Shown: positions 3,645 to 58,686, counted from the stretch's first letter. The stretch: DNA of 64,000 nucleotides from Marsupella aquatica (GCA_973895155.1 OZ316899.1:186001-250000); one strand, 5' to 3'. Notes: a model not told the origin generated them from the letters alone. Translations and numbers: made by a program.

Positions 3645-3969
3645 TTCAGTCTAACTGTGCTCGGCACGCGCGTTAGGTGGGTCTTAGGCCGCTATTATTA
3701 GCATAACGACAGTATTTAGATAATCATTAGGGGTAGGACATCATTAGGCAATAAGGGGGACTTCAGGTTCGGGCTGGCGGCGGGTCGCTATTCGCACACC
3801 CGGGTTACGAGCGTGGAAGGGCCCCTCCCTCGGGTCCGTATAACGAACTTAAGGAAGCGGCCACTGACGCACGCTAACTCAGACCGGCGGAGTGGCCGGT
3901 ACACCACAAGCGTGAGCGGTTCAGCCTATGGGCGTCGAGGAGACGTCGGGGATCGACAAGCCCTCAAAG

Positions 3970-3977
3970 TATAAAAG
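3970..3977 (+). promoter_or_regulatory. TATA box of LTR-A
   Basis: TATAAAAG about 100 bp upstream of the LTR-internal ATG (4078), conserved in the second copy (36482-36489). Confidence 0.6.
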
Positions 3978-4077
3978 GGGAGCCAACCCTTTGTAGTGCA
4001 CCAGTCCATCAGTCCGCGCGCCAGCTTCGACCCCAGCTCTCTCGTTCTCTCTAGGTCGCCACTACTATCTCCTCTGA

Positions 4078-6720: not shown

Positions 6721-8055
6721 CGGCGGAGTAGGAATAGATTAGGATTAGGATTGGCTTAGTCAGGCTCTTGGGACAGGCACCTGCCTTAGGTACAACAGCG
6801 CTGCCCTGCTGTCCAGCCTGCGTAGATTAGGATCTTCTAATAAGACACAGCCGTTTTCCGGCCTGACTGTCAGCTTAGTTAGGACCTTAGTCAGCGAATC
6901 TTCGGCGAGAGGACACCCCGTCCCTCGGCTCTTAGTATTTAGTGTACCCCTCGGTAGAGGCAGGGGGGTTTTTAGTTTCAGAGTCGGACATCCGCGGGAT
7001 ATGCGGGGAGTCCCGACCTCTGGGAATGACAGAGTACCAAGGGGAGGGGGTAGGACTAAGCTCGTCGGGCGAGTGCGGAGCCGGGCTCCGTTGTAGTGTG
7101 CACCCTCGGCCTTGAACCTGTTCATTCCAGGGCTGTCGGGTCAACTAAGTGTACGCATATGTTCCCTTTGTAGTAAAATCCTTTCCCATCATTTTCCTTC
7201 GTGTAAATCGAGATTGTATGCATGTGTGCGCATATGTGTGTGGGTTTCTCATATATGGGTGGCAGCGCCAGGCCGAACGCACTACCCGAGACGTGCACAG
7301 GGTGCAGCCTGCGGGTAAGTGGTTGCGAGCACGGGTTGAGGACCGGTATCATCGAATCCGGATCGAAGGCGGACAGCACGAAGGCTTAGAAGCCCTTAAG
7401 CCGGGGTCGATCCTGCTATCGACTAAGGTACGTTCCGGCGGCGGAACACAAACCATACCTAGGAGGTGTCCGTATTTAGCAGTATGCGCACTTAGCGCTA
7501 GTTTACGAGAATAAGGTGCATTACGTGCTTCCCTTCCTGCCCGAACCCTCAGGTTTACGAGGGATGTGCCCGTCTAAGCTGAAGTCTGAGTTAAGGCCAA
7601 AGCCTACGATGTGACACTGTGGCTTTGTTACTTTTTGTGTTCCGACACTTTGCATCCTTTTTTAGTAAAGTAGTTGATTTTTGTCAAATTTTGAAGAGAG
7701 AGTGGGTGAGAGAGACAGAAACAGACGTGGGATTGCATTGCGACACTGGGCAGGCAGATAGGCCAAAGGAATTGACAATAATCTGACAACCCTGCATCAC
7801 CGATGCCTTGGAACTAGCACAGAATGAGGCGTTGGCAACTACCTCTACGTAGCCCACCCATGCTCCAAGAAATCTCAGTTGCCCTTTCCCTCATAGGATG
7901 AGCTGGATGTCACGACTCCAAGGTTCCACTACATCTAACAGAGCATCTTTAGTGTCATTACCACTACATCTGTGTTCCTTGGGGTGATCAGATCTAGTGT
8001 CTTGAGTCAAGCATTTTCCGCCTGTTGTTGATAGTGGGACTCAACAGAGCTCAAT

Positions 8056-13686: not shown

Positions 13687-14367
13687 ATGGCACGTAACAA
13701 GCAGAAGGCCAAGAAGCCTAAGACGGAGGTGAGCAACACACAGGTGTCTTGCACAGATTGTGAGAAGTTCTCCAAGAGTCAGGTGTACCAGAAGGCAGCT
13801 CATTGTTGTGCCATTTGTGATGATGGTGGGGGCTTGGTTATTTGTGATGGCCCATGCATGAGACATTTCCACGTGAACCCTGAGTCTAACCTTGCCGTAG
13901 AGAACAACTGTCCAGGGGTGGGCCTCCCCTCTGCACACGAGGGAGCCTGGATGTGCACTGATTGTGTAGAGAAGCAAGCTAAGTGTGCACAGTGTGGGAA
14001 GTTGGGGTCTTATGAGACCTTTGCTGATGCCGGGCTAGTTGTTCAGAAATGCCCTGACAGATTTTGCATAAGATTTTATTGTTTGTCATGTTTGCCTACT
14101 CATGCCACAGTTTGCCCACTTCATACATGCAAGGCATGTGGTGAGCATAATGATGAGTATTGGACAGACATAGTCCATTGTGTTAGATGTCCCACAATGT
14201 GGCATTTTCATTGCTTGAAGGACCTTCAAGCAGAAGGCTATGCTTGTGACAGAGAAATCTATGATCACTCTGCACATGGCGTTGATCGATGGATCTTTTA
14301 TTGTCATCGCCATCCGATTGATCCTACTTTGCGCATTCCTGTCAGAGATCACATATCTTGGCTTTGA
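13687..14367 (+). CDS. stand-alone EDM2-like PHD zinc-finger cluster protein (226 aa)
   Basis: CAICDDGGGLVICDGPCMRHFH; CTDC..KQAKCAQCGKLGS; CP..FC.RFYC..C; CPLHTCKAC; CVRCPTMWHFHCL; WIFYCHRHPIDPTLRIPVRDH. This matches the PHD array and IYC..H.ID..L.TP.RDH tail of plant EDM2. A tttgtag acceptor lies 2 nt before the ATG. Confidence 0.85.
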   Translation: MARNKQKAKKPKTEVSNTQVSCTDCEKFSKSQVYQKAAHCCAICDDGGGLVICDGPCMRHFHVNPESNLAVENNCPGVGLPSAHEGAWMCTDCVEKQAKCAQCGKLGSYETFADAGLVVQKCPDRFCIRFYCLSCLPTHATVCPLHTCKACGEHNDEYWTDIVHCVRCPTMWHFHCLKDLQAEGYACDREIYDHSAHGVDRWIFYCHRHPIDPTLRIPVRDHISWL

Positions 14368-15015: not shown

Positions 15016-16380
15016 ATGGGAAAAAGAAAGCGTAATACTTTAAGAAAAAAAGAATTGGGGGAAGATTTTTCTGTGGATGTATTTGTTACAGTGTGGGAAG
15101 ACCTCAAAAAATTAGATACCATAAAATTGAAGTTTGCACTTCATTGGATTCTATGCCATGACAACATCCTTGAACTTTTTGTTAAAAAAGTTCTTAAACT
15201 AGAGTCTTCAAGATTTTCAAGAACACTATTCTTGAATGGGTATCAAAATTGTAGAAGCCATATCATTCAGATCTTTCCTCCTGAGGTGTTCATTGAAATT
15301 GATGACGTCTTTCTTCATCACAGTTTCAGACTAAAATTACCTCAACCTTTGAAAAAATCAATTACCATGTTTTCTAATCTTGACATTAGAAAGCTTAAAC
15401 TTTTTCAAAAAGAAAGAGATAATATTTATAGAAGTGGAGGAACTTATGCCAAAGTTGAAGTAGACGTTCAACGTATTTCCTCTTCAAAACTAAAAACACT
15501 TACGGGTGTAATTTTAGGCGATTGGGATCAAACTACAACAACATTTACCTCTGATCCAAACTTTATTTTCTCAAAATTTCCATCAGACCTCATTATCATA
15601 GAAGAAAAAAAAGGATTTACCTATCTTTTTGATAGGTCTGGAATCAACCCATATTTGATAGCAATGATATTCCATCAAGATATCCTATCACCTGATTCAA
15701 TGATCTTCATTCGAAGATTATTAGAACAATTATATGCTGCCCATCATGTTATCCAAAGAGGGAAAGGAAAAAGATCATGGGAAAGTAAGATGACAGGGTT
15801 TGGTCCTTTTCATAATCCTTACAAAAAAGATCAAAGTTGTGTATCTTTTTATACTCATGAACAAAAGATAAAGACATTCTTCAATCAAGATTGTCCTGAT
15901 GCAGCCAATTTTGAAGACATGGTAGATAAATATTTTCATCGAGAGTTAATCGATATTATACTTGGACTCTACATGTGGTTATGTCCACAAATGTTAGACA
16001 GTTTTTTAGATTATTCTCATCCTTACTTACGTTCAAATGATTATGAGATGAACATATTTGATAAAGCACTAAAATGTAAAGGTCCTAGTGCTTATCAATT
16101 ATATATTAGTAAAGATTATTGTGTAGAAACTCACGCTGATCATGATACAGCAGAATTTACTTTATGTTATGTTAGTCATCCTGATGCCAAAATTTCTCCT
16201 GGAAACTTTATTATTCCAGAGTATGGAATATTATTACCTATTAGAGATGGTAATTTATTTTCATTTCGTAGTGACATTGTCCATGGCACAGGATATAGAA
16301 TTCCAACATCAAATCCTATATACGTAGGAGCTGTTACCATAAACAAAAAATTAGATAGACTTTTACAAAGAAAACATTAA
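15016..16380 (+). CDS. 2OG-Fe(II) dioxygenase, TET/JBP-like (454 aa)
   Basis: C-terminal DSBH signature: KMTGFG; YQLYISKDYCVET-H373-A-D375-HD; GNFIIPEYGILLPIRDGNLFSF; IV-H423-GT. Intronless and visibly AT-rich relative to the flanks. The N-terminus carries a basic NLS-like stretch (KRKR...RKK). Confidence 0.75.
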   Translation: MGKRKRNTLRKKELGEDFSVDVFVTVWEDLKKLDTIKLKFALHWILCHDNILELFVKKVLKLESSRFSRTLFLNGYQNCRSHIIQIFPPEVFIEIDDVFLHHSFRLKLPQPLKKSITMFSNLDIRKLKLFQKERDNIYRSGGTYAKVEVDVQRISSSKLKTLTGVILGDWDQTTTTFTSDPNFIFSKFPSDLIIIEEKKGFTYLFDRSGINPYLIAMIFHQDILSPDSMIFIRRLLEQLYAAHHVIQRGKGKRSWESKMTGFGPFHNPYKKDQSCVSFYTHEQKIKTFFNQDCPDAANFEDMVDKYFHRELIDIILGLYMWLCPQMLDSFLDYSHPYLRSNDYEMNIFDKALKCKGPSAYQLYISKDYCVETHADHDTAEFTLCYVSHPDAKISPGNFIIPEYGILLPIRDGNLFSFRSDIVHGTGYRIPTSNPIYVGAVTINKKLDRLLQRKH

Positions 16381-16852: not shown

Positions 16853-16873
16853 TTAGGGATTTAGGGTTTAGGG
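16853..16873 (+). repeat. interstitial telomeric motif (TTTAGGG, about 3 units)
   Basis: ttagggatttagggtttaggg followed directly by T8. Confidence 0.8.
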
Positions 16874-35900: not shown

Positions 35901-36481
35901 CACCATTCTGGAAGTCGCACTAGAGCTTCATTTATCGACAAGAACTTCTCGGACTTGTCGAAGAAGAGTTTGCTCACCACCCCTTCGCCTACTACTTGTG
36001 GATCCACCTGCAAGGGTTGATTGATACAACAGTGGCCGCTAATCTCAGATAGTAGTTCTACCCCTAACCTCTTTTCATACTCATACTTCTTTGGTTGTAG
36101 CTTTTTGAGTGAGTCTGCTAACTGTGACGCCGCCGGTATGGCGGTTAATGAGTGATTCGGTCTAACTGCACTCGGCACGCGCGTTAGGAGTGTCTTAGAC
36201 TGCTATTATTAGCATAACAACAGTATTTAGGTAATCATTATGGGTAGGATATCATTAGGCAATAAGGGGGAATTCAGGTTCGGACTGGCGGCTGGTCGCT
36301 ATTCGCACACCCGGGTTACGAGCGTGGAGGGGCCCCTCCCTCGGGTCCGTATAACAAACTTAAGGAAGCGGCCACTGACACGCGCTGACTCAGACCGGCG
36401 GAGTGGCCGGCACACCACAAGCATGAACGGTTCAGCCTATGGGCGTCGAGGAGACGTCGGGGGATCGACAAGCGCTCAAGG

Positions 36482-36489
36482 TATAAAAG
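36482..36489 (+). promoter_or_regulatory. TATA box of the solo LTR-A
   Basis: TATAAAAG about 100 bp upstream of the ATG at 36590. Confidence 0.6.
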
Positions 36490-36589
36490 GGGAGCCAACC
36501 CTTTGTAGTGCACCAGTCCATCAGTCCACGCGCCAGCTTCGACCCCAGCTCTCTCGTTCGCTCTAAGTCGCCACTACTATCTCCTCTGA

Positions 36590-39220
36590 ATGTCGCACAC
36601 GATCCTCTCCAGCTCGGCCATTCGATTCTGGACGCAGTTCCTATTTACCGGGAGGCACTTGGCCGACTCATTGAAACACGCCAACCCACGCCGATACGAA
36701 ATCGAACGCGAGTACGAGCGAGCCATCCGCCTAGCAGGATGACACCACTACATCCTTAACTTTGACTACCCATCTGAGAGCAAGCTTTACCGACCAGTAG
36801 AGGTATCCGGGTACTTCTTCAACGGAGACAAATATATCGGGTTCTGGGAAGCATTGCTTCGGCTTCCGGACGAGGTCTTCAATATCCCGGGTACGATCAA
36901 CTTGCAGCGACATCACTTCGACCACATCCCTGCTCAGGTTCGGGCTATCATCAACAGCGAGTCCAACACTACCCGTTCGACAAGGTCGTCTGCCCTCGCT
37001 TCGGAGAACTTCTACCAGCACCTACAGAGCTTCATAGGAGCTCGGCCAACAACCAACATGACCAACTCAGTTGTACCCATACCCGTACCCGTACAACCTC
37101 AGTCTCAGCTTCAGCCTCAGCCGCAGCCTAGCCAAACCCCACCACCGATCGCCCAGCCAGCACAAGTGCGCTCCGTCATCAACGCTGTGGATCTTAGCAA
37201 TGACGACGAGGCTACCCTACCCTTGACCAGGCGGCCAAGAGGAACAAGCGCTCAGGGGGCCGATACTATATCGTCCCCACCCCCTGCTCTGACCCCAGGA
37301 GTGGCCCCGACAGACAACATGGTGACCGTGGCCGACCCGGGCCCGTTACTAACGGCAGTAGCACTACCCAGGCCCGATCGGGAGGATGGGGAGGTGTCAC
37401 CTTCCCCAAGCCAGTCACGGGGGAAGAAGAGGAAGGAATCCGCCACTGCATCCGGGTTACCATTGGCCACGGTAGCCGTGGCCAAGGTGACGATGCACCG
37501 CATGGGGGAAAACGTTCACAAAAACATCCTCCATCCCAAGCATGCGGTGTACCTGAAGACTCAGGGATTCGAGCACCTCGCCTCCCTCCCCTGGAACACT
37601 TGCAGGTACTACGGGGAGGACATGATGGAGTTCGTCAAGAATTATGACGACGCGCGTCAACATACTCGACTACGGGGAAGGAGTATGTCCCTCACGGAAG
37701 AACGGCTCAGGATGATCTTCGGGTTACCCGAAGGTGACCATCGAGTCGAATCACGGGCTCCCGGGGGCAAGGGAGCCAAGTACCAATCTTCAAGTTTTCC
37801 CTCAGAGGGAGCAGTGGACAACGGGTTCGTGATGAAAACCTGCCTCATCCCCGAGATAGCTGAGCGACTGGAGTTCCAGAGGTACGGCCTCCACATGATG
37901 GAACCCCGGGGGGAGATCTCCGCCGCCCAGGTTATCCAGGTCGAGAACTATCGACCTAGGAGGTGGGCGTCGTACTTCGCTAAGAAATTCCATGAAGAGA
38001 TGGAGCGGCGAAGGAAGACGATGTACATTGGCGGGAAGGCGTATTTCGCTAGCCACATCGAGATCATTCTTGAGTGGTACGCCCGGTTTGATCGACGAAC
38101 CCTTCCCCGTGTCAACGTTACAAAGCTGGTCCCAGCTAGGTGGGTTTTCCCGGCCTTGGAGAGACGGCCCCAGCCCGAGGCCCGAAGTCCAGCGGACATG
38201 CCAGCTTCACCCACCCCACCTCCACAAGTAGCTGTAGTTGTAACCGAGGAGGTACCGGATGGGTCGAGTGTCGCAACCGTTGATGCGACCCAACAGGCCG
38301 GGCTAAGTACAGAAGTCGGTACGGCGGAGGTCTTACCCGAGCCCGGTTCTCCCAAAGACCCACCGGTGGCTATTCCGGAGAACCGGACATTGCTACAGGA
38401 GGACGCTCCAGCCCCTTCCAACATTACGTCCCCAAGGCTGGACGTCACTGCCCCGGCCCCCGCGCGTGTGGACGTCTGCCCGTGCCCAACTCCGGACAGG
38501 CACAACCTGGACCACCCGGAACTCTTCGTACCGGGTACATTTCTGAACGGGCTTCTGGGAGATTTCTCTCATCAAATTGCCCGGGATACCGGGGAGTTCA
38601 TGGCCCGGAAGGTAGCCTGTTTCTTCAATCAGGAGTTGGTTGCCGCAGTAAAGGCAGGTCGGGCCCAGTCAGAGGCCCTTCAGAGGATAGAGCGGTACCG
38701 GGTGGAGTCCATGTACCTAAAGAACGAAGTTGCGGCTCAAGAGGCTGAGCTTCGGCAACTACGACCCAAGGTTGCAGCCGCCGATGAGTTCTTAGCAAAG
38801 GCGCACGCTCTTACCGCCCTAGCCGAACAGGCCAAAGGTGGGAACAAAGCCGAGATTACACGACTCCGGAACCAGATTGACAGTTTGAAGAATCAAACTG
38901 TCACCTGGCAGAAAGACCTGGAGGAGGCCGAGGAACGGGCCCAGCGAGACACGGCGGAGATAGCCACGCTGCAGGCCGAGGTGGCACGGCTCCAAACCGA
39001 GGCCGAGAAGCAGGACCAGCTGGCGGGTAAACTGACAAGTGACGCCCAGCAGTTGGAGGAGGCTTGTCAGGAGGCAGCAGAGGAGACGGATGCGGCGAGG
39101 CGAGAGAATGAATCTCTACTGGACCAGGTCCAGCTCCTCAAGGCGGACAATGACAGGCTTCGAAGGCAGCGGGATGGCCGCTCCCATTCAGGTGGCTCTG
39201 GCAAGCGTGCCAGGCATTAG
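36590..39220 (+). pseudogene. LTR-internal ORF, second copy (~876 aa); one premature stop
   Basis: In frame from ATG 36590 to TAG 39220 except TGA at 36740-36742, which is CGA in copy 1. It is open across the position where copy 1 has its stop. Confidence 0.87.
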
Positions 39221-40706
39221 CGGCAGAGTAGGAATAGAGTAGGATTAGGACTAGCTTAGTCAGGCTCTTGGGACAGGCACCTGCCTTAGGTACAGCTTCG
39301 CTGCCGTGCTGTCCAGCCTGCATAGATTAGGATCTTCTAATAAGACACAGCCGTTTCCGGCCTGACTGTCAGCTTAGTTAGGACCGTAGTCAGTGAATCT
39401 TCGGCGAGAGGACACCCCGTCCCTCGGCCCTTAGTATTTAGTGCACCCCTCGGTAGAGTCGAGGGGGGGGGGGGTTTTAGTTGCAAAGTTGGGCGTCCGC
39501 GGTATGTGCGGGGAGTCCCGACCTCTGGGAATGAAAGAGTACCAAGGGGAGGGGGTAGGACTAAGCTCGTCGGGCGAGTGCGGAGCCGGGCTCCGTTGTA
39601 GTGTGCACCCTCGGCCTTGAACCTGTTCATTCCGGGGCTGTCGGGTCAACTAAGTGTACGCATATGTTCCCTTTGTAGTAAAATCCTTTCCCATCATTTT
39701 CCTTCGTGTAAATCGAGATTGTATGCATGTGCGCGTGTTGGTTTCTCGTATATGGGTGGCAGCGCCAGGCCGAACGCACTACCCGAGACGTGCACAGGGT
39801 GCAGCCTGCGGGTAAGTGGTTGCGAGCACGGGTTGAGGACCTGTATCATCGAATCCGGATCGAAGGCGGACAGCACGAAGGCTTAGAAGTCCTTAAGCCG
39901 GGGTCGATCCTGCTATCGACTAAGGTACGTTCCGGCGGCGGAACACAAACCATACCTAGGAGGTGTCCGTATTTAGCAGTATGCGCACTTAGCGCTAGTT
40001 TACGAGAATAAGGTGCATTACGTGCTTCCCTTCCTGCCCGAACCCTCAGATTTACGAGGGATGTGCCCGTCTAAGCTGAAGTCTGAGTTAAGGCCGCAGT
40101 CGATGACGTGACACTAACGTTACTCCTATCTGGACAAATTTGATCCAGAAAGCATACGCCGTCCCTTCATTCAGCATCTGGTTATTGGAGAACTTACGGG
40201 TAAGGAATGACTGCGATTTCTTATCCATAATCTAGCTGCAATTGCTCTCTGTACTCCTGATTCTCTCGAGAAACTTTGTGCGTCTATCGATTGGAGCTAC
40301 TCGTAGCTAGGGCGAGCGAAGGTCGATCGAACCAGCAAAGCAAGGGAATTGCGAGTGTGAATAATGAAGGTTTGGGGTGGCCTTGCTTGCCTTACCCTCT
40401 CCGCTGTGGTTGAAGTCCCTCGTGCTAGTGCCGCCGCCGGTCCCAACCATGAGAATCTGCATCGATTTCACGTTCTTGGCGTATGACTTATCCGCGTACG
40501 GCGTACTTACTCCCGGGAACATAGTGACGGCCATCACTAATAACCGAAGGGAACCTTCATCTTTAACGGCTGTCAGTCTACTCTTCTTCTAACTACTCTA
40601 GTCCCCGTCATTACGTGCGTACTTCACTCTTTCTACGTACCTTCTACCTAATTACCCCGTCTAAACTCCGTATCTTGCGTATACCCTATTCTTTAGCCGC
40701 GTCACA

Positions 40707-40880
40707 AACATTCTAGCCCCTTCCAAGTTCCGGAGAGTCCAAAGCCTTAGTGAACCATGGAGATAGTGGAGCATCACAGTTAATTTGTGCAAAAGTCTTT
40801 TGAAGCCAAGTCCCCCTTCAACTCTTGGGAGAGACATCTTGGCCCAAACCACCAGGTTCATTAGACTTATGACTTGATAC
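40707..40880 (-). mobile_element. short L1-clade LINE fragment
   Basis: LVVWAKMSLPRVEGGLGFK matches the common plant L1 motif V.W..(C/S)LP..EGGLG. Confidence 0.55.
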
Positions 40881-41044
40881 AATCTTCATTTAATAACTAT
40901 AGTACAATATTCACTAATCATCAGTATATGGTAAGCTCCAATTCCTCCATATAGTATGTAGACAAAAATTGAAGCAATCGATGAAATAATTAGCAATTTC
41001 ATTACACTTGATATAATTAATTACAGTGCTTCCTTACTTCTTCC

Positions 41045-43684
41045 TCACCAGTACTCAGGATATTTTGTTTTCACAATAGCAGCAGCAAACAGAACAAAGT
41101 TATTCACTACTTTCCCTGTACCTATCTGCATGAACCAAGTAGCAAGTTCTTCATCACTTTTCTCTCGAATTTCCGGAAATTCCTTGAACAATTCTGTTTG
41201 TATCCAAGAAACCGTCCAGCCTTGCCACACAAAATGTCGAAGACGCTCGCCTGTTCTATCATTGCACTGATCACCATATGGTCCTTTATGAATACACATT
41301 CCAGTGACAACTACAGTATGTTGAAAGTGACACTTAAAACAAGTCCATGCATTTTGAGGGAATGTGTTCTTGCAGGTCCGGGCCTGGTGAGATCCTAGAC
41401 ATCTAAAACACAATGACCGCAATATAGGACAGTTGACAGCATTGTGTACTTCTTGCTCCCTTGATTTAGGACACTGACAAATTAAGCATTGACTTCCATC
41501 ACCCGCAAAAGTTCTGATGATACGAAGATCCCTTTTATCACTCTCAAAAGATCGGCTGTGTGCCATAGCCCTTAGCCTTGCAACCACAGGCTCTGCTTCA
41601 TGTACCCCTTGTATAATTGGGGTCATCGGCAAGGTGTTTCCTTGTCGTCTTGGCATGGGAGTGGCTGGGGGTTGCGTAGGAGTTTCATATGTTGACTCAT
41701 CCGAACCCCCTCTTCCTGGAATTCCCATTGAAGATGATGCTACCTCATGTGGTGGAATTGAGGCTGTTCTGCAAGGAATGTCTTGTGTGAACACCTCAAA
41801 GTCTATGTCCACACCTGGGCTGCACATCACAGATGCTTGGGAACACAAGTCACACAAACTAGAGAATGGAATAAGATGACATACTTGAGGTTTTCCATCG
41901 ACCTGGTCATGGAGCCCAAACCGACGACATGATGTCTTGTTCTCTATCCATTTGTGTGAAGCCGCTGTGGTTGAATCAATGCGTTCGGCCATCTTGCGAT
42001 AAGCAAGGTTGGTCACCACATAACTCATCGCTGGGAGCCCATCACGTCCACCTCGTCCAGATTCTTGGTGGAAGTGTTCCAGAGACCTGAAACTACCACG
42101 ATGAATGACAAGCTTAACCCATTTATAATTGTATCCACTACTAATCACTCCGGTGGCCACCATGATCTTACAAGCACCTGACGTCCAAGAACTCAATGAA
42201 GCCCTCTTCACCGCTATGTCCAGATGCGCATGCACATACATGCATGACATTTCTTTCCCTTGGAGGATTGTTGTAGTTGATTCCACCTCCTCGCGGGTTA
42301 GACAAAATACTAGGGCCCTCTCTTCTGGCAAAGAATATGCTCTCCAATCACGCAAAAGACTCACTATTTCTTCATCCATCATGTTATGGCCAACCTCAAC
42401 AACGGCATACCTGATGTTGGGTCTCACAGTAGGACAACGAATCCACACCATCTCTGTAGCTAACATCCGCTCAATATCAATTTGATTCTTGGGTGCTAGG
42501 GATGCGGTTAACCCTATGATTTGGCAATTAATTTCCATGAGGCCAACCAACTTTTTCATTGACGGTCGAAAGTCGGATAACAGGAGGTGCACCTCGTCGT
42601 AGAAAATGGAATGCAAGGAACCACTGCATTTCAACTGCTTTGCCAAGATAATGAATAGTTTGGATTCTGCAGCAGTCTCCACAGCCACAAAAATGATCGA
42701 AGGAGGTCTTGCCACTTCGACTGTGCCACCATCCTTATACACAACACAACTAATATTTGCTTGTTTGCATTCCTCTACGTGGCCCTCTACTAGGATAGTG
42801 AGTGGAACGATCACAATCACCGTCCTATTCTGTCCCATGGTGGAAGGTGCCATGAACACCAATGATTTTCCAGACCCAGTGGGTAGTATGGCAACAAAGT
42901 CCACCACATTATCTATGGATAGAGCAACTGCTGTTGCTTTTTCCGACGATTTCCACTGTTGATGACCAAGCCTTCTTAAGGCTTGACAAGCTCCAGCAGT
43001 CCTATTGAGACAAACTTGTAGCAGGGGATCACTTTCTCCACTTGCCAATAATGTCTGATGGATGTTTGAGTGGAAAACTGTAAACCGCCTCCTTTTGGGA
43101 ATTTGCCTCACCTCATATTCAACACCTCCAACGGGTCCCCAAAAGTCAAAAGGTGCAGTCGACATTACCTCGGGCCTCTGTGACCCACCGAGGCCAACCA
43201 ACTTGTGCCACAATCGTGACACCAATACACACCCTCTTAAAATATGTCCATCCATGCCTCTAGGATCCTTTGTACTATGAGCATAGTGATGGCCGACCGT
43301 AGCTGTTTCATGACCACCTGCTACATCCACAAGGTCTTCTTGTAAATGGGCCTTACAAGCTCGTATATTCTCACTCCAATGTGCTGCCACATGCCGGTAC
43401 TTTGCAATCCCAAATGGAATGCCGCAGTGCTTTTGGAAAGCATCTAATACACTGGCAGAAAGGTCTGCTCCCGTCAGCCTCTTGTCCATGGCCACAAACC
43501 AACAATCCAGGTACATTGCTGCAACTTCCGGACCCCACAAAATATTCACCACGAAAGATTGTACTGGGCGAACTAGACATAACAATTTCACAAATAGGTG
43601 GCTTTGATTGTCAGGAATGAACCGAGCAGTGAGGTTTATAGGTTTCCCAGCATTTGCACATTTGTGGTAGGATTGATAAACCAT
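41045..43684 (-). CDS. tyrosine-recombinase-like domain fused to a RecQ-type SF2 helicase with RQC-like and C-terminal Zn-binding regions (telomere-linked-helicase architecture), 879 aa; N-terminus apparently eroded
   Basis: Helicase motifs LPTGSGKS, DEVH, LTAS, TVRPNIRY, MVATGVISSG, HQESGRGGRDG; RQC-like CRR...CDLC; C-terminal CFRC..H..C and CFKC..H. N-terminal YHK...RFIP...VRP...KY-R97-H...AGG-H125-ETATVGHH-Y134-A. Upstream in-frame sequence (GDRAFIW) continues to a stop about 45 nt further 5'. Confidence 0.8.
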   Translation of the reverse strand: MVYQSYHKCANAGKPINLTARFIPDNQSHLFVKLLCLVRPVQSFVVNILWGPEVAAMYLDCWFVAMDKRLTGADLSASVLDAFQKHCGIPFGIAKYRHVAAHWSENIRACKAHLQEDLVDVAGGHETATVGHHYAHSTKDPRGMDGHILRGCVLVSRLWHKLVGLGGSQRPEVMSTAPFDFWGPVGGVEYEVRQIPKRRRFTVFHSNIHQTLLASGESDPLLQVCLNRTAGACQALRRLGHQQWKSSEKATAVALSIDNVVDFVAILPTGSGKSLVFMAPSTMGQNRTVIVIVPLTILVEGHVEECKQANISCVVYKDGGTVEVARPPSIIFVAVETAAESKLFIILAKQLKCSGSLHSIFYDEVHLLLSDFRPSMKKLVGLMEINCQIIGLTASLAPKNQIDIERMLATEMVWIRCPTVRPNIRYAVVEVGHNMMDEEIVSLLRDWRAYSLPEERALVFCLTREEVESTTTILQGKEMSCMYVHAHLDIAVKRASLSSWTSGACKIMVATGVISSGYNYKWVKLVIHRGSFRSLEHFHQESGRGGRDGLPAMSYVVTNLAYRKMAERIDSTTAASHKWIENKTSCRRFGLHDQVDGKPQVCHLIPFSSLCDLCSQASVMCSPGVDIDFEVFTQDIPCRTASIPPHEVASSSMGIPGRGGSDESTYETPTQPPATPMPRRQGNTLPMTPIIQGVHEAEPVVARLRAMAHSRSFESDKRDLRIIRTFAGDGSQCLICQCPKSREQEVHNAVNCPILRSLCFRCLGSHQARTCKNTFPQNAWTCFKCHFQHTVVVTGMCIHKGPYGDQCNDRTGERLRHFVWQGWTVSWIQTELFKEFPEIREKSDEELATWFMQIGTGKVVNNFVLFAAAIVKTKYPEYW

Positions 43685-44118
43685 CAGCGTATCAGATAAC
43701 CAAATGAATGCTCTATCCCCTTCTAACTACCGTACAACTCGAATGGGTGGGGTTGGCATATCCCCGTGTAGAGGTAGGGTAGTTATTAGTACCAGTGCCA
43801 GTGCCGCTCTAACGACAAACACTGAGCTTGAAGGGTGTGGTGGCCGCATCACCATGTAGTACTAGGGTACTTAATTATCAGTACAAGCGTCACTCAACAA
43901 GAAACACTCAGTCGCATATTCTGCTCGGGGCATCTCTCTCATACTCAGGTAGTTCAATGCTTTCATCGGGCGACGGGTATGAAACACTGTTCATTCGCAC
44001 ATTTTACTTTTTGGGCTATCGGCGGGCGAGGCGAGGTGAGGCGGAGCGAGAGAGAGACAATCCCTCTTACCCAGGTTTAGGGTTCAACCATCCTTTGGTG
44101 TCATTCTTTATTCGCGCT

Positions 44119-46342
44119 ATGACGATGGTGAATCAGGCAAGGCATTATTGGGGCTGTGTTCTCGAGTACGGGGGTCTACTCATAGCAACATACGAAGAGC
44201 AGCAGCCAGAGCAAGCAGATGAAGAGAGACAACTCATACAAAAGTTGTGGGAGCTCCTTGAGGTTGCATTCGTCGGCGGGGAATGCATTTATGTGGATCT
44301 TTTATGGTCACCATCGGTTGATGAACTCAACCGCATTTGGTTTGAGGAGGATCAGTTGTTGTCGGTAAGGCGAGCGATTGATAGGTGTCCAGACGACAGG
44401 TGGGTACTACCAGACTGGACGTTGAAGTGGACGCCAGAGGCTGTGCTAGGTGAAGGCTCACGGCGAGGAAGCAAGGGGAAACAAGCTCTGCTGGCAGCAA
44501 ATGCACGCGGGAAGAAACATGAAGAGGCAGTCGCTGCACCACCGGCAAAATTAAAGAAGAGTGGAGCAGGTCGGCAGTCAGCACGACCGCGACGAAACGG
44601 GACACCGACAGTGCCACCAACAAGTCTAGGTCGGAATTTGAGACTGGGGAAGAACCGGGAGGAATTGATGCTGCGGCCACCACATCGACGCCGAAGGATT
44701 GGAATTGGAAGGGTTGGGTTGACACGGTAGTAGAGGAACTTTGACTCAAATTTATTCAGGATGACAACGATGTATTCCGAGTCGTAGTTTCGGGCAGGTA
44801 TCCCAAATTCCTACACGGGTCGGGGCTGGAGAAATTTGTCTGGTTACCCTGGACTGCGCAAGATATAACCCACAAAGAGATGATGATGTTCGTAGCTAAT
44901 TGGGATCCTGAGCGCAAGCTCACACATATACTTGGTCGAGAATTCCAATTTTCAGAGAAGGTGGTATCCGAAGTGTTCGGGCTAGCCTTGGGAGAGCCGG
45001 TTAAAATCGGCAGGATGGTTCACGTTAAGGACACCAAGTGCAGGGACTTTGAGGGACCACCCAACGTGAACGGATTCTTGCGCTGTCAATGTATCAATAT
45101 TCAGACTCGCGACATCCTGGATTTCCTTCAAGTTACGATGTCGTTTACTTCGAGATGGCCTGAGTTCGGGAAGAATGAGGTGGCATTGGTAAATCAGCTC
45201 AGCACAGGGGTGGACTACTGTGGTTTTCTTTTCAAGAGATTGTTGGAGGCGTTGAATACCAATCATAGAATGATGTCGGTTGGGGGTGTTTCCCGGCTGG
45301 CATATCACTTGCCACTAATCATAAAACATGCTCGAACTCAACTACATCAGCCAGCAGAGATTCCCACTCAAATCGGACTAGGGAAGGGACAAGAAGATGA
45401 AGAAGGCCGGGACCCAGCACTTATCATGTGGAGTAAGAAACCACTGCCGCTGCCGCTAAGGCACACAGCAGAGGTCGACACCTCAAAGTCCCAAACAGAA
45501 CTAGGAGATGACATGGGAGTTCCTGTGCAGAACGCCAAGGACGATGAGGTTGAGCAATTGTTTTCCCGACAATTCTCCTTGGGGTTAGCTCTACCGGCTA
45601 GAAGGACGATATCAAAATCCTCTGCTGAGAACAATGGCGGAGACGAGTCTGAAAATAACCCGGCCGTAGGACCACCCGCAAGAATCTCGATTGGACACGA
45701 GACGGTTCCGATTGTGGAATATCAACCCGATGCTGAATCACCAAAGGGAGCCCAAACAATTGAGAAGGCTGCACCCCTTTTATAGGAGGAGTTGCGGCAG
45801 CTCGTGCAGGAAGTTCGGCGGAAGGAGGAGGAGGCGTCCAAAGCTAAGAAATCGCTTGAGTCGCTTTGTATTCCATTGAGTAAGGTGTTGCAGGAGACAG
45901 CCATACTCCAAACTTGGTATACAGCCGAACTGGCAACCGAGAAAGCAAAGACCGCTGATGCCAACATAAATTTGGTGAATTACGACATACCAAGCACCAG
46001 CAAGTGTCTGATTTGGAACTCAAGTTGGCCAGAGCAGTTCAGGACCTGGCCAAGGAAAGGGACAACTCGATCCACAAGTTGGGTTTAGCCGCAAAAGAAC
46101 TGGAGGCCGACAGACAAAAGTCAGAAGCCAAACTTGGGGAGATGCAAGCTAAGTTAGAGACAGAGGTTGCAAGTCTTCGATCGGAGAACCAGGCACTCCA
46201 ACATCAATTGCAAAAGGCTAATGAGGAGTTGATGTCAGGAACTGCAGAGAGACAGGCTTTAGGGTTGGAATGCGAAGATCTCCTTGACCGGAATCAGCTT
46301 CTGAAAACGCAAGCACAAAATCAGCTAAACCAGCTGAAGTAG
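44119..46342 (+). pseudogene. frameshifted member of the retroelement accessory-domain + coiled-coil family
   Basis: FLHGSGLEKFVWLPW...MFVANWD...ILGREFQFSEKVVSEVFGL...NG...CINIQTR...SVGG...LAYHLPLII, then coiled-coil ORFs 45792-46088 and 46004-46342. Several frameshifts and stops. Confidence 0.72.
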
Positions 46343-49216
46343 CTCATGGGTTTAGGGTTTAGGGTACCTGTATATAAAGCAAGTTGTTCAATCAGGAGTT
46401 GGTATTAGCTTCAATTCCAAGACACTGAACATTGAGTAATGCCACACAGATCAGCACAACGTGAAGGGTCAGTTTCATGATTACTATTCATTCACATCTT
46501 TTGCAATGTGTTGTCTTGTAGACAGGCATGGGCGAGCCACTCAAACTGTGGATCGCATAATTTTAGGGATGCGTGGAGGTATAAAGTGATGGAATTTCCG
46601 AGGCTGTTGGGCACACAAGCGAGTGTGGATCGTGGAAACGGGGCGAAGCCAGCTACAGACGTTCTACATTCAACTTTAAACCCTAAATCCAACATAGCCC
46701 GGGGGGCGGGTGTTACCAGACAAGCTTGCAACGTCTCTCTAGTGGGTTTCCAATGTTCAGGAGCTGGTGGCCTTCCATCCATGTTTTGGCTGGCCCTGAG
46801 GCTGCCTTTCAACAGTTCATGGACAAGGTCATCATGCGGGTCCCTAAGACCCGCCGTCATGTCAGTGGCATGAAGCCACTGGCCTCGACATGATGCCTCG
46901 TCATAGATACGCGTTTCCCCAAGCTGGTGCCACAATGTGTGGTTCACAGGCTGGCCCTGCCTTTTTATGATAGTTCAGGGTCGATTGCAGAATCAAATGT
47001 TTTTCAGCCCGAGAACGTGTGCTCTACAAAGCGACCATAAGTTATATTGACCATAGGGTTCCGGATGATTCCGAAAACTTACGTTTTGAAGGCCACGACT
47101 GTTAAAGTACAGAAGGATGATACTCCATGTTTTTGTGATGACGGCACTTCCCCTGTGATAACCCCGAACTTCCCCTGTTTTGTTGAAGATCATATTTTTT
47201 AAGGGTCACGCATCTCCCCAAATTGGGTTCTGAATTTTGGAATTCTGAATTGATACATGAGTATCTGGTGTACACCATGCCTTTGTTTAAGGAGGATGAT
47301 ACTACTCCTTCATTTGTTATGACAAGACAGAGCAAATTGAATTTGCAATGGCCCAAAGCATGATGCACCCTCAACCCTGAATATGAACAATTTCCACGGA
47401 TGCCTCCTGTGGATACGTACACGCGGCAGCGGCAGTACCAGGCAATGCTAGGAGCACTTAAATATAGATTTGGTAAAATCCGGTCCCCTCCCCCCTTAGA
47501 TATTCCACGGAACATCGAGGTGCACTCAAGCGGGTATGTTGGACCTTTCATTTCAGGGTCCTCCATCCAAACAAATGCACATCCATTCACTTGGTTGTCA
47601 TACTTACTCCGACCGATGATGCATACGGCCAATGTTTGCTAGACCGCAAATCTGCTTCAGGTTACTTATTCAAATTAGGCGGAGGAGCCTGTATCTACAT
47701 CTGACACACTTTTAGTTTGGCTGTATGGCCACAAGAAACCCAGCCCGGGGCTAACAAGTCACTTCAAAACCGGAGCATCATATAGCACATACACATCCAT
47801 TTAATTTCACTTTAACAGGGAGCAATGTCTATTTACGATTTCTTGTCCACTACCAATATGCAACGTTTTATTCAGCTTATGGATGTACATGCTATTTAAT
47901 ATACTATTGGCTACATATATAGGATTCAGCGGAGGGCATGGTATGAGTAGAAAACGGCGGGACCGTAAGACATGAGGATCAAAAGGGGAACACAACCTAT
48001 GATCAACGGCTGACGTGATAGTCGCCAAATAGGCAAAGACAGGGAGGAGCCTCAATGTAACGGCGTCACACTTCCCCAAACTACTGTACATTCGACCCAA
48101 AAGGTTCCAATACCCCCTGTGGACTAAAAGTGAGAACGGAAGTGAACACCTTTGACAGACCACTGGATGGTTCCCCGCCGGGGCTTCTTCACTGGCCGGT
48201 CTTACGGAGTGCGGTGCTCCCTCTACAGTGGTTGAACATCTCGTTTACCTGTCTGCCATGGTGCCGGCTTCACCGGTTTTTTAGCATGTCGATCATCCTC
48301 CGGTTGTTGCCCCCCTTTCGTGGGCCACCCTATTGTACTGGGTCACTTCAAATGGAATTAAATTTGATGTGTCAAGGCAAAAACTTTGACAGACCTCGGG
48401 ATGACTTTGACGGACCACGCGACGATCGTGTGAAAGAACGTGCAGGGAGCTGCCATGATGATTAGTCATGTGCTGGTGTTGGTTGCAAGTGGATGCGTGT
48501 TGAAGTGTCGGCACAGCTATCTCGCTTGTTGGACGTTGGCTGCAGAATCAGGCCGGCGAAAGTCCGGCTGGAGGATTTGAACACCAACATACTTCCCCGC
48601 TATGAAACCTTCATCGATCTCATTTGATTTTCACCGGCTTTGATTTTTCACCTGGCATTGAGCATGTCCAATCTTCGCAGGGCCACTATCGGTGTTGACA
48701 CACAGCATAAGAAAGATCTACAAAGCTTTGATCAGCGGCAGCAACGCTGCGAGTTCAGCCAGTCGATTTCATTGTAAGCGTGGCATGACGATGTGCAGCC
48801 CCCCTTAATTTTGTCGTTAGCAACAAAGGCATCATTGAGCGACCAAAAGCCTACGAATGGGGATGGCTTACCCACCATCCTAACCGGATCTTTAGGAGTT
48901 AATAAGTGTATGTTTGGCCGTGGGAATCATTATGACCAAAGGACATGGGGATGCGACACAGTTTCACGCTGAGAGCAGGTCGTCCGAACATGGAAGCTCA
49001 CGCCACTTTGAAACTGGCAGAACGACGAAGAAAGCATAAGGAGAAAGTTTCTCGGGCCTGGGAGCTCATCGCGCAACTTTAGAGTTTCCAAACTCCCTCA
49101 CTCCAAACAGCTCTCCAAAATCACGGCCTGATCCGAATGGATCGTTGCCTATCAATATATCGGGATGGCTAGCGGCGTGTGCTCCAAGGTTTCTAAGGTG
49201 ACGATATCACCTGAGT

Positions 49217-54930: not shown

Positions 54931-55615
54931 GGGAAAAAGACCACGAAAAAGACCGCAAAGACCACGCATTGCGATCGCTGGGCTGCACGAAAATGTATAT
55001 ACTACAACAGTTGTACGTCACACTTTCCAACATGGTGCCTTCTAACATCACGGGAGGATATACATTTGGATCCATGCATTCTAAAAATTGGATATCAAAA
55101 TGTGATAGTCCGGATGACAAAGCTTAGTTCTTTGGGGTACATTGCATTGGTGGTGATCAGGTGAACTTTGTTCATGATTTATGTCATCATTTGGGCTAAT
55201 TGTTTCGTTGAGTGCTAAAGCCTAAACACCTGAACTCCCAAGACAAAACTCCCGAACCCATTGTGCAAGCCATAAACCCAAGGATAAGCATTCAACCGGC
55301 CCATAACCTGTGATTGTGTGCCGTTACAAAGAGATGGAATGAAATGATCGCTCACTGCTTTCATTCAGTGTAGGCTGTGTGAATCACATCGAGTCCGTCC
55401 GGAAAGTAAAAAATGCGCCAGGAAAAACCCCGGTGGATACACGCCCAAAGCCAGCCACTCACACGACAAAAGTGTAGAGCAAACCGGACAGAAACATGAA
55501 AATGACAACATGTGCTTCTATGAGACGATTGAACCAAGTACAGTGCTAAGCCTCATGACTGGCGTCTTGGAGATACCTACTCCAACGTCTAAAGTTTGCC
55601 TATCCTAAACCTACC

Positions 55616-56056
55616 CTAAACCCTAAACTGTAAACCCATAATCTTGCGTTCGATCATCGGATGACTTGCTGTCGGACTTGAACAGATTCCTCTCAGCGGT
55701 CCGGATCCCATAATTTCCTTCAGCCTAGCAATAAACCGGGATGATAGACGGACAGCCACCAAACTCGACGCCATCGGACGATGGCTAGGAAATGCTACTG
55801 CCTTCTGCTTCCGGCTCTTCCCCCATGTTGCCGTCATAGGCTCGGAGGTTACAAACTCCACCTCAGCAGGTTGGGCCATCGATGGTCCCACCGATGTGGG
55901 TACGGCCATCTCTTGTAGGTCGAGGATGGTAGTGGTGGGTGTAGCCATCGCTGGGCGGGATGGGAAATTGGTCCCATATGAAGTCGTCGGGTCCCCCGGG
56001 GGCTTCGAGTCGTCCGTGTCCGAGCTCACCTCAATTGTGTTCACCTCCGTAACCAC
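55616..56056 (-). CDS. possible exon or short S/T/P-rich ORF of unknown gene, flanked by CCCTAAA tracts
   Basis: 146-codon GC-rich open frame (IEVSSDTDDSKPP...KSRKQKAV) with no recognisable domain. Telomere motifs at ~55605-55627 and ~56100-56117. Confidence 0.3.
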   Translation of the reverse strand: MVTEVNTIEVSSDTDDSKPPGDPTTSYGTNFPSRPAMATPTTTILDLQEMAVPTSVGPSMAQPAEVEFVTSEPMTATWGKSRKQKAVAFPSHRPMASSLVAVRLSSRFIARLKEIMGSGPLRGICSSPTASHPMIERKIMGLQFRV

Positions 56057-58686
56057 ACGGCACTGATGTGCGGATGCAACATAAGTGCACTGTGCTCATA
56101 AACCCTAAACCCTAAACACTCAACCCTCAACGAACCGGTACATTAAGAGGTTGAGTCCAACCCCAATCCGGTCTTCTATTCCTTTGCTGGAAACAGTCAA
56201 TCCTGTCAATATTACTGTGAGTTTCAAAGCTGGATCAAACATTTTGTAGTTGAGGCGACTGAGAAATGCCCTTGACTGAGACATACCTCTAGAAGAATCT
56301 TACTAGTGTAATGCCCAATGAAGAAATACCTACACAAGAACACTTGTGCTCATCTACTCTAATTCTCCTATTTACTATCTAGGTAAGTTCCCACAAACCT
56401 CCAAGTACCACTCCTCAAACTGAATTGGCTTGTGGCCTCCATAGGTACCTCCTCCTACCTTCAATTGTTACCCCCAGTAGCTCCTTCCCGGTATCTAGTA
56501 ACTCTCTAATTCTTGACCCTAAATCCTGGGCACTCATCTCAATCCTCAAATCTCTCTCTCTTGGATTCCAACAGCACTCCGATCTCTCCATACTCAACCC
56601 TAGGGTGTCTACTTGACCTGGTATCACTCCTTGGATCCCTGAGCAGCACCCATAAGCCACAAGCAATGCAAACGAAATTTCCCTCAAATCTCAATGCAGG
56701 TTCCAATGGAAATGGGCTGCGAATCATGACGATAATGATGATGCGCGCAGAAATTTGTTTGGATTATTGTACAAAATTGGATTGATCTTCTTCACGCAAA
56801 TGATACCAAGCTATTTAAAAGGTCCAAATGTGATAGCTCCTGTGTTGTACAATACGATGAACTGAAAAACGTTTGGCTTCAATTTAACCTGATTAAAAAA
56901 TAAAAACCGAAAACAACAATTCTATCAGGTTGCTTCATATATAGTCCGGCTGAAGAGAGCCCCAGCTCCTTTTTGATCATTTACTTGGAATCTCCAAAAA
57001 GACTCACGTCATGCTTTCCATGCTGAACAGGAGTCCAACACTGCAACCTGTTCTTCTAAGCTTATTATACTGAAGCCATTTCTCTATCTGCAATAAGCTG
57101 CTGAGTACTGATAGTTGGGCTGGACTGGGGTAGTTGGCAATCGATTCCCTGCCAGTTTTTGCCAGAATCAACATCAACTGGCCAGGCTGCAACAGACGTT
57201 TCTTGCATATGGGACACTAATGGCAATGGAACATGTCCAGCTGTGCTGCTCTACCCCTAAACGAAAACATGGCAAAATGGATTTCAAAGAATTTTACAAC
57301 CCTAAACTCTCTCCACAACACTGAATCACAAATTCGTCAGAAGCAAAACACAAATTACCATCCAGGTCGTCTCCTTGGAAGATGGCCTCTTGGTGAATGA
57401 CATATTTGTCTTTCACAGGATTACAAAATCATAGGGTACTGTCGGGAATCATGAGAGTACTGCTAACTTGAGCCACAATTCCGCCCATCAACACTGCAAT
57501 TAATCCAGCCTAATCCAATTCAGAACTCGTCAACAAAAACTACTACTTCTTCTATGTCTTCTGCACCTGGTGTTGTTGTACCGTGATCCAAAGCAGGATC
57601 TGGGCAGCCACTGAGTCCTCCCAAAGCCTCTCACCATGATCCAATCCACCCTCCACTTTCAACCCGAGCTAGGTAAAAGGATCAACAAAACAATGCCAAT
57701 ACACGATTCAAGGTCAGACCTTTTTGTCACACATGCAAACACCAGAAAACCCAGCTGAACTGGAAAAAATATGAGGAAATGGCACCGGTCAAACTTCTCA
57801 CAGAGCACTGGCTTTGGCCTCCAATGGAGACCACCACATGGGTTACAGCCGCCTGCCCTGCCCTGCCCTGCCCCGCCCCGCTCTTGTTGCTTGGGTCATT
57901 TTCTTGCTACTGCTGTATCCTAAACATGAGCTCCAATAGGCACACTCCGCCAGTTTCCATCCATGCAGCTAAGAGCTAAAAAGAGAGAACGGGCATTCGA
58001 GTAGATCCACATTCAAGCTTGTCGAAGGAGGAGTGCAAGGAACGAAGAGAGGCTCGGATTTGAGATGACAGGGCTCCCAGACAGGCTAAAATATCTGACT
58101 ACAGAGAACCAATTGAATTTATCGAAGCTCCTAGTGAATCAATTGAATTTCCTCCTGTCCACATTGACAAATAACGGAAATAAGTGCCTCATTTCATTGC
58201 AATGTCCCACTAAATTTGACAGCACATTCGCATCAGCAAGAGGTGGAGAGTAGATTGGCAGGGCTGAATCAAGAATGAACCCCAAACTTAAATAGCTAAG
58301 TTCAGTTCGAGCAGTTGAGATCTACCGAAAAGAGATTGTTGTAGTACTACGTGTGTCTCTGGTGGACGCGATTGAAAACATTGTTGTATGAATTGGAAAG
58401 CTCATCACCATGGCCACAGACTCGGTTTCAAGTCGTTAGTATTGATTTTCAAACTCTTTCCCAGCTCACGCATTTTGGAATGCATTTACGCTCAAGCCCG
58501 TTGTGTTTTCAAAACACTCACCCTCGCTCCCAAGTTCAACAAGCCCCCATAGTGACGGTCTCGAGGCTTCACTCATTACTTAAGACTAGCACCAACTACC
58601 CATTCTTTCAATGTCAGTACCTGAGGAGAGTACAATAAAATGTAAACAAAATGTATTCCATATTCCAACTCTTGAAATGTCTCTTT

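Follow-up and report, generated by a model that had tools for sequence, protein, structure and literature searches.

What kind of gene joins part of a tyrosine recombinase (YR) to a RecQ-type helicase in one open reading frame (ORF), and is it the engine of a mobile element or a remnant of something else? This question is raised by positions 41045-43830 of a 64,000-nt stretch of DNA from Marsupella aquatica (GCA_973895155.1 OZ316899.1:186001-250000; "the window" hereafter means this whole stretch), where a sequence-only reading had seen a recombinase/helicase fusion of the fungal telomere-linked helicase (TLH) type, serving as the motor and integrase of a mobile element and as a candidate mobiliser of neighbouring cargo. 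We consider it likely that the locus is a young, 5'-truncated copy of a multi-copy TLH-family gene, which is non-autonomous because of that truncation, and that full-length members of the family combine a YR-like recombinase module with the helicase and would copy or move themselves. The gene is laid out as follows.

41045-43684, minus strand: intact, intronless ORF of 879 codons from ATG to stop, containing the C-terminal half of the TLH (YR-like) domain, a linker, a RecQ-type helicase, zinc motifs and a C-terminal region
43685-43720, minus strand: 12 extra in-frame codons (GDRAFIWLSDTL) with family homology, 5' of the first Met and up to the truncation point
43720-43721: truncation breakpoint, where family homology stops and contigs of other copies part from the window
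43190-43684, minus strand: C-terminal half of the TLH domain (predicted YR-like catalytic fold), aa 1-165, equivalent to positions 254-438 of the 461 in the family profile
43661-43663, minus strand: K8 (YHK), candidate catalytic Lys (column K in 101/102)
43394-43396, minus strand: R97 (YRH), candidate Arg II (column R in 100/102)
43310-43312, minus strand: H125 (GGH), candidate His/Trp III (column H in 93/102)
43283-43285, minus strand: Y134 (HHYAH), candidate nucleophilic Tyr (column Y in 102/102)
42485-42904, minus strand: ATP-binding lobe of the helicase, Pfam DEAD, aa 261-400, with motifs I PTGSGKS, II DEVH and III TAS
42038-42331, minus strand: C-terminal lobe of the helicase, Pfam Helicase_C, aa 452-549, with motif VI HQESGRGGRDG
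41843-41929, minus strand: RecQ-like Cys4 pattern CRRF...C...CDLC, aa 586-614, conserved in the Calypogeia and Sphagnum copies
41372-41488, minus strand: Cys/His-rich region, aa 733-771, with the CCHC knuckle CFRCLGSHQARTC, aligned with fungal and bryophyte homologues
40924-41044, minus strand: 3' trailer and approximate 3' limit of the repeated unit (in run X1 the multi-copy contig ends at 40946 and the single-copy flank contig at 40923)

The sequence-only reading had described an intronless gene with a complete RecQ motif set followed by zinc-knuckle-like motifs, and this description holds. Motifs I, II, III and VI are all intact, and among PDB sequences the core matches the RecQ family best (RECQ1 3e-26, E. 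coli RecQ 2e-23, then WRN, BLM, RECQ5 and RECQ4, over a range of 3e-26 to 1e-13), the best DEAD-box match being 4e-10. Downstream come the Cys4 pattern (aa 586-614), which we take to resemble the RecQ zinc-binding subdomain and at which Pfam PF16124 gives no match, and a CX2CX3HX4C knuckle at aa 759-771; a feature search of the ESM Atlas with the C-terminal 190 aa reached a top score of 0.70 and was uninformative. A RecQ-type core followed by a Cys4 pattern is what canonical RecQ proteins also have (RECQ1, E. coli RecQ, WRN, BLM, plant RECQL). Unlike them, the window gene lacks the RQC winged helix and the HRDC domain (Pfam; no match to PF16124, PF09382 or PF00570), is intronless and repeated, and belongs to a separate clade.

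Which helicases, then, are its relatives? The best database match is protein P0001 of the leafy liverwort Calypogeia fissa (43% identity, window residues 2-600 against P0001 residues 349-921), and the next matches, 1300-1500 aa long, are fungal proteins with Pfam OrsD (C2H2-type fingers) at the N-terminal end and the helicase near their C-terminus. These fungal OrsD and helicase proteins are colinear with the window ORF at 24-26% identity over 96% of its length; in the alignment with P0002 (96% covered, 24% identity) the C-terminal knuckle region is included. The exact protein sequence of the window ORF is not on record in public assemblies. Colinearity with these proteins, together with the match of the modelled pre-helicase domain to S. 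pombe Tlh1/Tlh2 and the S. cerevisiae Y'-Help1 proteins described below, supports the assignment of the ORF to the fungal TLH type that the sequence-only reading had proposed. The TLH family, earlier described in fungi and in one choanoflagellate, is thereby found in land plants, in liverworts and mosses. In the literature that we searched, which lacks most subscription journals, neither TLH genes in plants or bryophytes nor a recombinase fold for TLH, Y' or YRF1 is reported, and the TLH domain is described only as a conserved TLH-specific motif.

Sequence searches show a very large family: among 1.8 billion proteins, 7044 cluster representatives match a profile of the pre-helicase region at E<=1e-3, of which 1654 do so at E<=1e-30. 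Its neighbours in the ESM Atlas and AlphaFold DB carry helicase or C2H2 annotation, the Atlas clusters being mostly from Ascomycota. A word-indexed protein search with the TLH-domain part alone found only Calypogeia and one Sphagnum cluster, and the range of the family in plants is probably undersampled. Both the TLH-domain tree and that of the helicase core unite the three bryophyte sequences in one clade on a long branch (support 99 and 100). The helicase tree, whose sole plant-lineage RecQ is that of the charophyte Closterium, places this clade within a TLH-like group (support 97) and apart from canonical RecQs (support 97-99), and an ordinary plant RecQ is therefore excluded, as the sequence-only reading had argued from gene structure.

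Does the region in front of the helicase have the fold of a YR? The sequence-only reading had pointed to an R-H...GH...Y arrangement at this place, and the residues are indeed there, as YRH (R97), GGH (H125) and Y134, to which a lysine in YHK (K8) can be added, all in columns that are 91-100% conserved. Among 102 family members, in the numbering of the liverwort homologue P0001, R156 is found in 101, K211 in 101, R301 in 100, H329 in 93 (Arg in 7) and Y338 in 102, which places the whole R, K, R, H, Y set at 91-100% conservation, and a Glu stands three residues after Arg I in 102/102. AlphaFold2 models of the domain were built on P0001 with 101-102 aligned relatives, and are confident, with predicted local distance difference test scores (pLDDT) of 82.9 and 84.8 and predicted template-modelling scores (pTM) of 0.83 and 0.87. 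In the homologue's model the Lys (K211) lies between two long strands (202-209 and 220-225), Arg II in a helix, the His after the next helix and the Tyr in a low-confidence loop before the last two helices.

Compared with Swiss-Prot AlphaFold models, the domain matches S. pombe Tlh1 (1.4e-12), Tlh2 (1.6e-11) and eight S. cerevisiae Y'-Help1 copies (2e-7 to 6e-5), and next come XerC/XerD/XerA and the transposase B of Tn554 (TnpB). A domain-only model was then compared by VIA-align with 48,161 PDB representative chains, only 30 of which reached Z>=5, and the top 28 were all tyrosine recombinases, type IB topoisomerases (Topo IB) or the YR-derived Ndc10. XerA led (Z 11.7, 172 residues, 3.0 A), followed by XerH (10.7), Cre (9.3), Brujita integrase (9.1), IntI (9.0), bacterial Topo IB (8.8) and XerD (8.8), then by the Flp, lambda, HP1 and P2 integrases; protelomerases stood further down (Z 5.0-5.1, ranks 31-33). 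One relative in AlphaFold DB had been named automatically as a "Tyr recombinase domain-containing protein". On these grounds we read the TLH domain as a predicted YR/Topo IB-type catalytic domain with large insertions, whose chemistry full-length members probably retain.

A number of results weigh against this interpretation. Foldseek against the PDB also ranks recombinases first, yet at E values of 0.4-2, which are not significant, and the family lacks conservation at the His of the canonical HxxR motif. Pfam gave no recombinase family for the pre-helicase parts, whether at E up to 10 for the window ORF with seven relatives or at E up to 1 for all 101 alignment members; a PHROGs scan of the 102 members gave no match; a profile search of PDB sequences returned only chance kinase matches at E of about 1; and aligning the family profile with Cre and lambda Int by hhalign gave a probability below 1% (deepening these two templates from viral contigs yielded only copies that were 99-100% identical, and no added power). 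The same non-significant hhalign run sets the ARGxE motif of the family on Cre R173-E176. The YR fold that the sequence-only reading had proposed for the N-terminal domain is thus borne out by structural comparison of the homologue's model, and not by sequence profiles or by Foldseek significance.

Set beside tyrosine recombinases and Topo IB enzymes (XerA, XerH, Cre, IntI, lambda Int, Flp; bacterial, poxviral and eukaryotic Topo IB), the modelled domain has the same catalytic fold over 160-180 residues at about 3 A (Z up to 11.7), with R, K, R, H and Y in the canonical order and at similar spacing and with an R-x-x-E at Arg I. It differs from them in having no significant sequence similarity, in its size (370 aa as against about 180 aa), in its fusion to a helicase and in its HxxR position. 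The S. cerevisiae Y'-Help1/YRF1 proteins have the same predicted pre-helicase fold (template-modelling score 0.42-0.51 by query) and likewise belong to a repeated unit, but are far more divergent (12-13% identity), and no sequence-level match to them was obtained.

The fold also bears on the idea that the gene serves a DDE transposon as accessory helicase, or that it is merely a paralogue of an ordinary plant RecQ whose YR-like motif arose by chance. KolobokH and Academ elements are indeed reported to encode RecQ helicases (PMC9587614, PMC3627910). Nevertheless, the pre-helicase region is predicted to fold as a YR/Topo IB catalytic domain rather than an RNase-H-like DDE domain, no transposase Pfam family was found in the window ORF or in full-length relatives, the missing RQC and HRDC and the position in the helicase tree speak against a plant RecQ, and residues conserved across 102 relatives are not there by chance. 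We therefore regard either version as highly improbable.

If full-length members are probably active, is the window copy itself a motor and integrase? Family homology stops abruptly at 43720/43721. A profile hidden Markov model run over the six frames of the window recovered only positions 254-438 of 461 (E 7e-22, frame 43726-41048), and neither this search nor tblastn, queried with N-terminal parts of the proteins from Calypogeia and Sphagnum, found the missing N-terminal half elsewhere in the window, which rules out an intron or a nearby displaced exon there. We also aligned the contigs of four public runs to 39900-45800, and in three of them (X1, X2 and X3) contigs leave the window sequence at exactly 43720. 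Since homology ends where the contigs diverge, the copy has been truncated at its 5' end by an unrelated repeat, and it consequently lacks Arg I and the N-terminal zinc fingers. The first-Arg region, which had been thought to be eroded near 43730-43830, is thus absent rather than eroded.

The two repeats that border the locus are the following.

43721-45785, plus strand: unrelated repeated sequence with two ORFs of about 300 aa, in place of the 5' part of the gene
36118-40118, plus strand: 4-kb long terminal repeat (LTR)-like direct repeat, bounding the locus on its 3' side; a second copy lies at 3612-7616

What the truncated copy has lost is still present in other copies. A 5.8-kb contig from organism A is about 99% identical to the window over 40946-43720 and then continues for 3042 nt past the breakpoint, and the first 30 diverging letters in runs X1 and X2 (organism A) encode, in frame, SSLLIRNTAT immediately before GDRAFIW. 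The X3 consensus (organism B) gives SSVLVRVTAT at the same point, a noisier match, and the equivalent site, just past the Arg I motif, reads KSFLIRNTGTGERSFFW in Calypogeia and SSYLIRNTEHSDRTFYW in Sphagnum. These in-frame upstream residues show that fuller copies exist in the same organism. The repeat that starts at 43721 has other left flanks in its contigs elsewhere, and one of its ORFs shares 23% identity with ORFs inside the LTR-like repeats.

That the window copy belongs to a multi-copy family is supported by contig word depth: in run X1 the ORF has roughly ten times the depth of the unique flank, and in organism B its depth is much higher, such depths being crude. The repeated unit probably ends approximately 100 bp past the stop codon, because contigs break at 40923/40946. 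Against the collapsed contig the window ORF shows 21 differences, 8 of them synonymous and 13 not, and the resulting ratio of non-synonymous to synonymous change (pN/pS) of 0.47 is not significant. The open frame of the window copy is most simply explained by its recency, as it is about 99% identical to other copies. On the side of transcription, looking for sequencing runs labelled as RNA yielded none. In itself the copy is a truncated relic: without Arg I, the zinc fingers and a 5' region of its own, it cannot act as a recombinase, and the roles of motor and integrase that the sequence-only reading had given it, with the whole N-terminal third missing, do not apply. Nothing links it to the supposed cargo either, the neighbours being unrelated LTR-like repeats that cut the gene.

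These flanks also bear on whether the ORF might come from fungal contamination, or from a very recent transfer from a fungus. Such an origin would account for nearly all relatives being fungal, with Ascomycota the commonest phylum in the ESM Atlas clusters, and for the named relatives found, which were likewise all fungal. Contamination is nevertheless unlikely, because the ORF sits between plant-type repeats and has homologues in bryophyte assemblies. It is contiguous with one of the window's two copies of the 4-kb LTR-like repeat and with the plant repeat that truncates it; in run X1 a unique-flank contig runs from the LTR end into the 3' flank with 0 differences; the relatives closest to the ORF come from the assemblies of Calypogeia fissa and, on a 15.9-Mb chromosome, of Sphagnum jensenii; and near-identical sequence occurs in the runs of three coded organisms. 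The other nearest (presumably fungal) relatives are only about 25% identical, and the long-branched bryophyte clade is not nested close to any sampled fungus, a placement that argues against recent transfer from any of those sampled. Taken together, we give this explanation very little credence. The tree representatives are unlabelled, and ancient transfer and vertical descent with loss are indistinguishable with them.

What do fuller bryophyte copies look like? In a single frame, the window ORF is colinear with the Calypogeia locus (L001) and with a contig from a peat metagenome (L002), the latter two having two in-frame stops each, in different places, and no frameshift. The metagenome protein P0269 shares a 90% identity cluster with a Sphagnum jensenii protein, and the S. 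jensenii assembly holds a full-length colinear copy with seven in-frame stops (L003) at about 52-56 kb of its 15.9-Mb chromosome record. This single case is near a chromosome end, a closeness to either end that about 0.7% of positions would have by our own arithmetic. Directly upstream of the TLH domain, the Sphagnum contig L004 carries an OrsD stretch and classical C2H2 fingers in frame, and in L001 an OrsD-like stretch (9191-9457) lies upstream of the annotated start. Full-length bryophyte proteins therefore have the complete fungal TLH architecture, in the order C2H2/OrsD fingers, TLH domain (predicted YR/Topo IB fold with R-K-R-H-Y), RecQ-type 3'-5' helicase with its zinc motif, and CCHC knuckle.

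They thus resemble fungal TLHs (Magnaporthe TLH1, Ustilago UTASa, Fusarium, Botrytis) and S. pombe Tlh1/Tlh2 in combining C2H2/OrsD fingers, a TLH domain of about 250-450 aa, a RecQ-type helicase and C-terminal Cys/His motifs, in being multi-copy, in their 24-26% full-length identity and in the subtelomeric position of one Sphagnum copy. They differ in their land-plant host and in forming a distinct long-branched clade, and the window copy differs further in being truncated and lying between LTR-like repeats without an adjacent telomere array.

Several observations concern the condition of these copies. The Calypogeia gene model P0001 (L001 10001-13610) has "introns" that merely skip two in-frame stops, and its start is placed about 650-800 bp too far downstream, the homologous frame beginning near 9191-9353; as annotated, P0001 is a patched pseudogene. 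Over 3.6-4 kb, L001 9998-13636, L002 2072-6124, L003 9437-13492 and L004 4611-8636 contain 2, 2, 7 and 3 internal stops, respectively, and no frameshift, and the differences in contigs aligned to the window are mostly transitions. Damage by stops only, together with transitions, agrees with methylated repeats decaying by C-to-T change and not with decay through random indels.

How would such a family spread? In the mechanism that we favour, the zinc fingers would position the full-length protein on DNA, the YR-like domain would cut and rejoin DNA through a phosphotyrosine link, and the RecQ motor would unwind or branch-migrate the substrate or an intermediate, by which the unit could copy itself to, or move between, chromosome ends and other sites in a Crypton-like manner. 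In the older yeast literature Y' units are described as extrachromosomal circles, which would fit a recombinase. Cryptons (and the Starship DUF3435 "captains") are likewise eukaryotic elements in which a YR is the only catalytic protein, organised as intronless single-gene units without terminal inverted repeats, and the Crypton-derived QRICH1 is among the weaker VIA-align matches of the TLH-domain model (9hjt, Z 5.2). Unlike the bryophyte TLH unit, Cryptons lack a helicase and have defined ends and targets, and the TLH unit has neither defined ends nor shown sequence similarity to them.

Mobility of the TLH unit is, however, the part of our account that we infer, and the points that speak against it are the following. 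Neither element ends, nor target-site features, nor circular forms were found. In Sphagnum, copies have more than 4 kb of upstream sequence in common and no element end is reached: a common 5' boundary of L002 and L003 was considered as an element end and rejected, as it reflects truncation of L003 only, the metagenome contigs L004 and L005 having more than another 4 kb in common upstream of it. Copy number read from contig depth is rough, and the pN/pS of 0.47 rests on too few differences between copies to show selection. Fungal TLH genes, moreover, are usually viewed as subtelomeric families spread by recombination and not as transposons.

The family could accordingly be one of host genes concerned with chromosome-end maintenance and spread only by subtelomeric recombination or segmental duplication, in which the YR-like module would be a Topo IB-like swivel or a junction-resolving partner of the helicase (compare RecQ-Top3) and the window copy a dead by-product. 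Much of the same evidence suits it. A role in chromosome-end maintenance has been proposed for S. pombe tlh1, and for Y'-Help1 in telomerase-deficient yeast survivors, and roles in telomerase-negative cells are summarised in bioRxiv 10.1101/2024.02.27.582403. The TLH domain matches Tlh1/2 and Y'-Help1, Topo IB enzymes score like many recombinases (Z 8.2-8.8), and R-K-R-H-Y is the pentad that recombinases have in common with Topo IB. L004 and L005 share at least 7.9 kb at 98% identity, including 4 kb of upstream tandem repeats, which goes beyond a single gene unit; this upstream sharing in the Sphagnum contigs and the Sphagnum copy near a chromosome end suit a host gene family about as well as a mobile unit. 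On the other side, the window copy lies between LTR-like repeats without a telomere array and with only two-unit TTTAGGG runs, such as those 12 kb away, the Calypogeia and Sphagnum copies that we examined are pseudogenes with scattered in-frame stops, like silenced repeats, and the family is huge and patchy (its 7044 cluster representatives), as is more typical of selfish elements. We thus think the host-family explanation unlikely overall, while granting it far more weight than either contamination or a DDE transposon, and continue to prefer self-copying or moving by full-length members.

Taken a step further, the TLH and Y' helicases might be, or might descend from, an unrecognised superfamily of self-propagating elements in which one protein couples a YR-type domain to a RecQ helicase. 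Such a superfamily would span the fungal TLHs, S. pombe Tlh1/2, Y'-Help1, the choanoflagellate TLH and the bryophytes, would colonise chromosome ends, and would have a bryophyte branch, with its copies of about 99% identity, recently active in land plants. We put this broader proposal forward tentatively, as possible though more doubtful than not.

TLH/Y' helicase genes have been catalogued at fungal chromosome ends for more than 25 years and are induced or amplified when telomerase fails. Their defining TLH domain had no assigned function in the literature that we searched, and a predicted YR/Topo IB-type fold with a conserved catalytic set gives it a testable mechanism and reopens the old idea of Y'/TLH units as mobile elements. 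With the same architecture present in mosses and liverworts, there is now a second kingdom for studies of telomere linkage, of copy-number dynamics and of possible transfer between kingdoms. The value of the window copy lies in marking the TLH family and in its precisely mapped breakpoint.

Finally, some features of the neighbourhood and of the other loci can be recorded. The two copies of the 4-kb direct repeat (3612-7616 and 36118-40118) are 89-96% identical and 32.5 kb apart, both carry a long coiled-coil ORF (5185-6720 and 36854-39220), and the first follows a Ty3-type pol fragment (reverse transcriptase, RNase H and integrase zinc domain, 1311-2630); they look like unusually long, ORF-bearing LTRs. 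No telomere array is present within the 64-kb window, where isolated two-unit TTTAGGG/CCCTAAA runs occur at 55614-55627, 56103-56116, 16860-16873 and 46351-46364, and where three 21-nt matches to the telomere repeat with at most 2 mismatches were found, as against 0 expected by chance. Upstream of the Sphagnum TLH-type ORF, at a distance of 0.5-2 kb, the metagenome contigs carry a tandem pair of units of about 730 bp that are 67-69% identical (L004 2709-4180, L005 2229-3700). The pair falls within the stretch of at least 7.9 kb common to both contigs and may be a promoter, a subtelomeric repeat or an element end. A 454-aa ORF of the window (15016-16380) has no Pfam family at E<=1e-3, and the 226-aa ORF beside it (13687-14367) gives weak NSD-type PHD finger matches (E 1e-4) that fall under the Pfam cut-offs. 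In the 3' flank of the helicase gene, a 73-aa ORF on the minus strand (40661-40882) reads ...WAKMSLPRVEGGLGFKRLL..., which by eye we take to be like the conserved C-terminal region of the reverse transcriptases of plant long interspersed nuclear elements (LINEs), in which case the gene would abut a LINE-like fragment.

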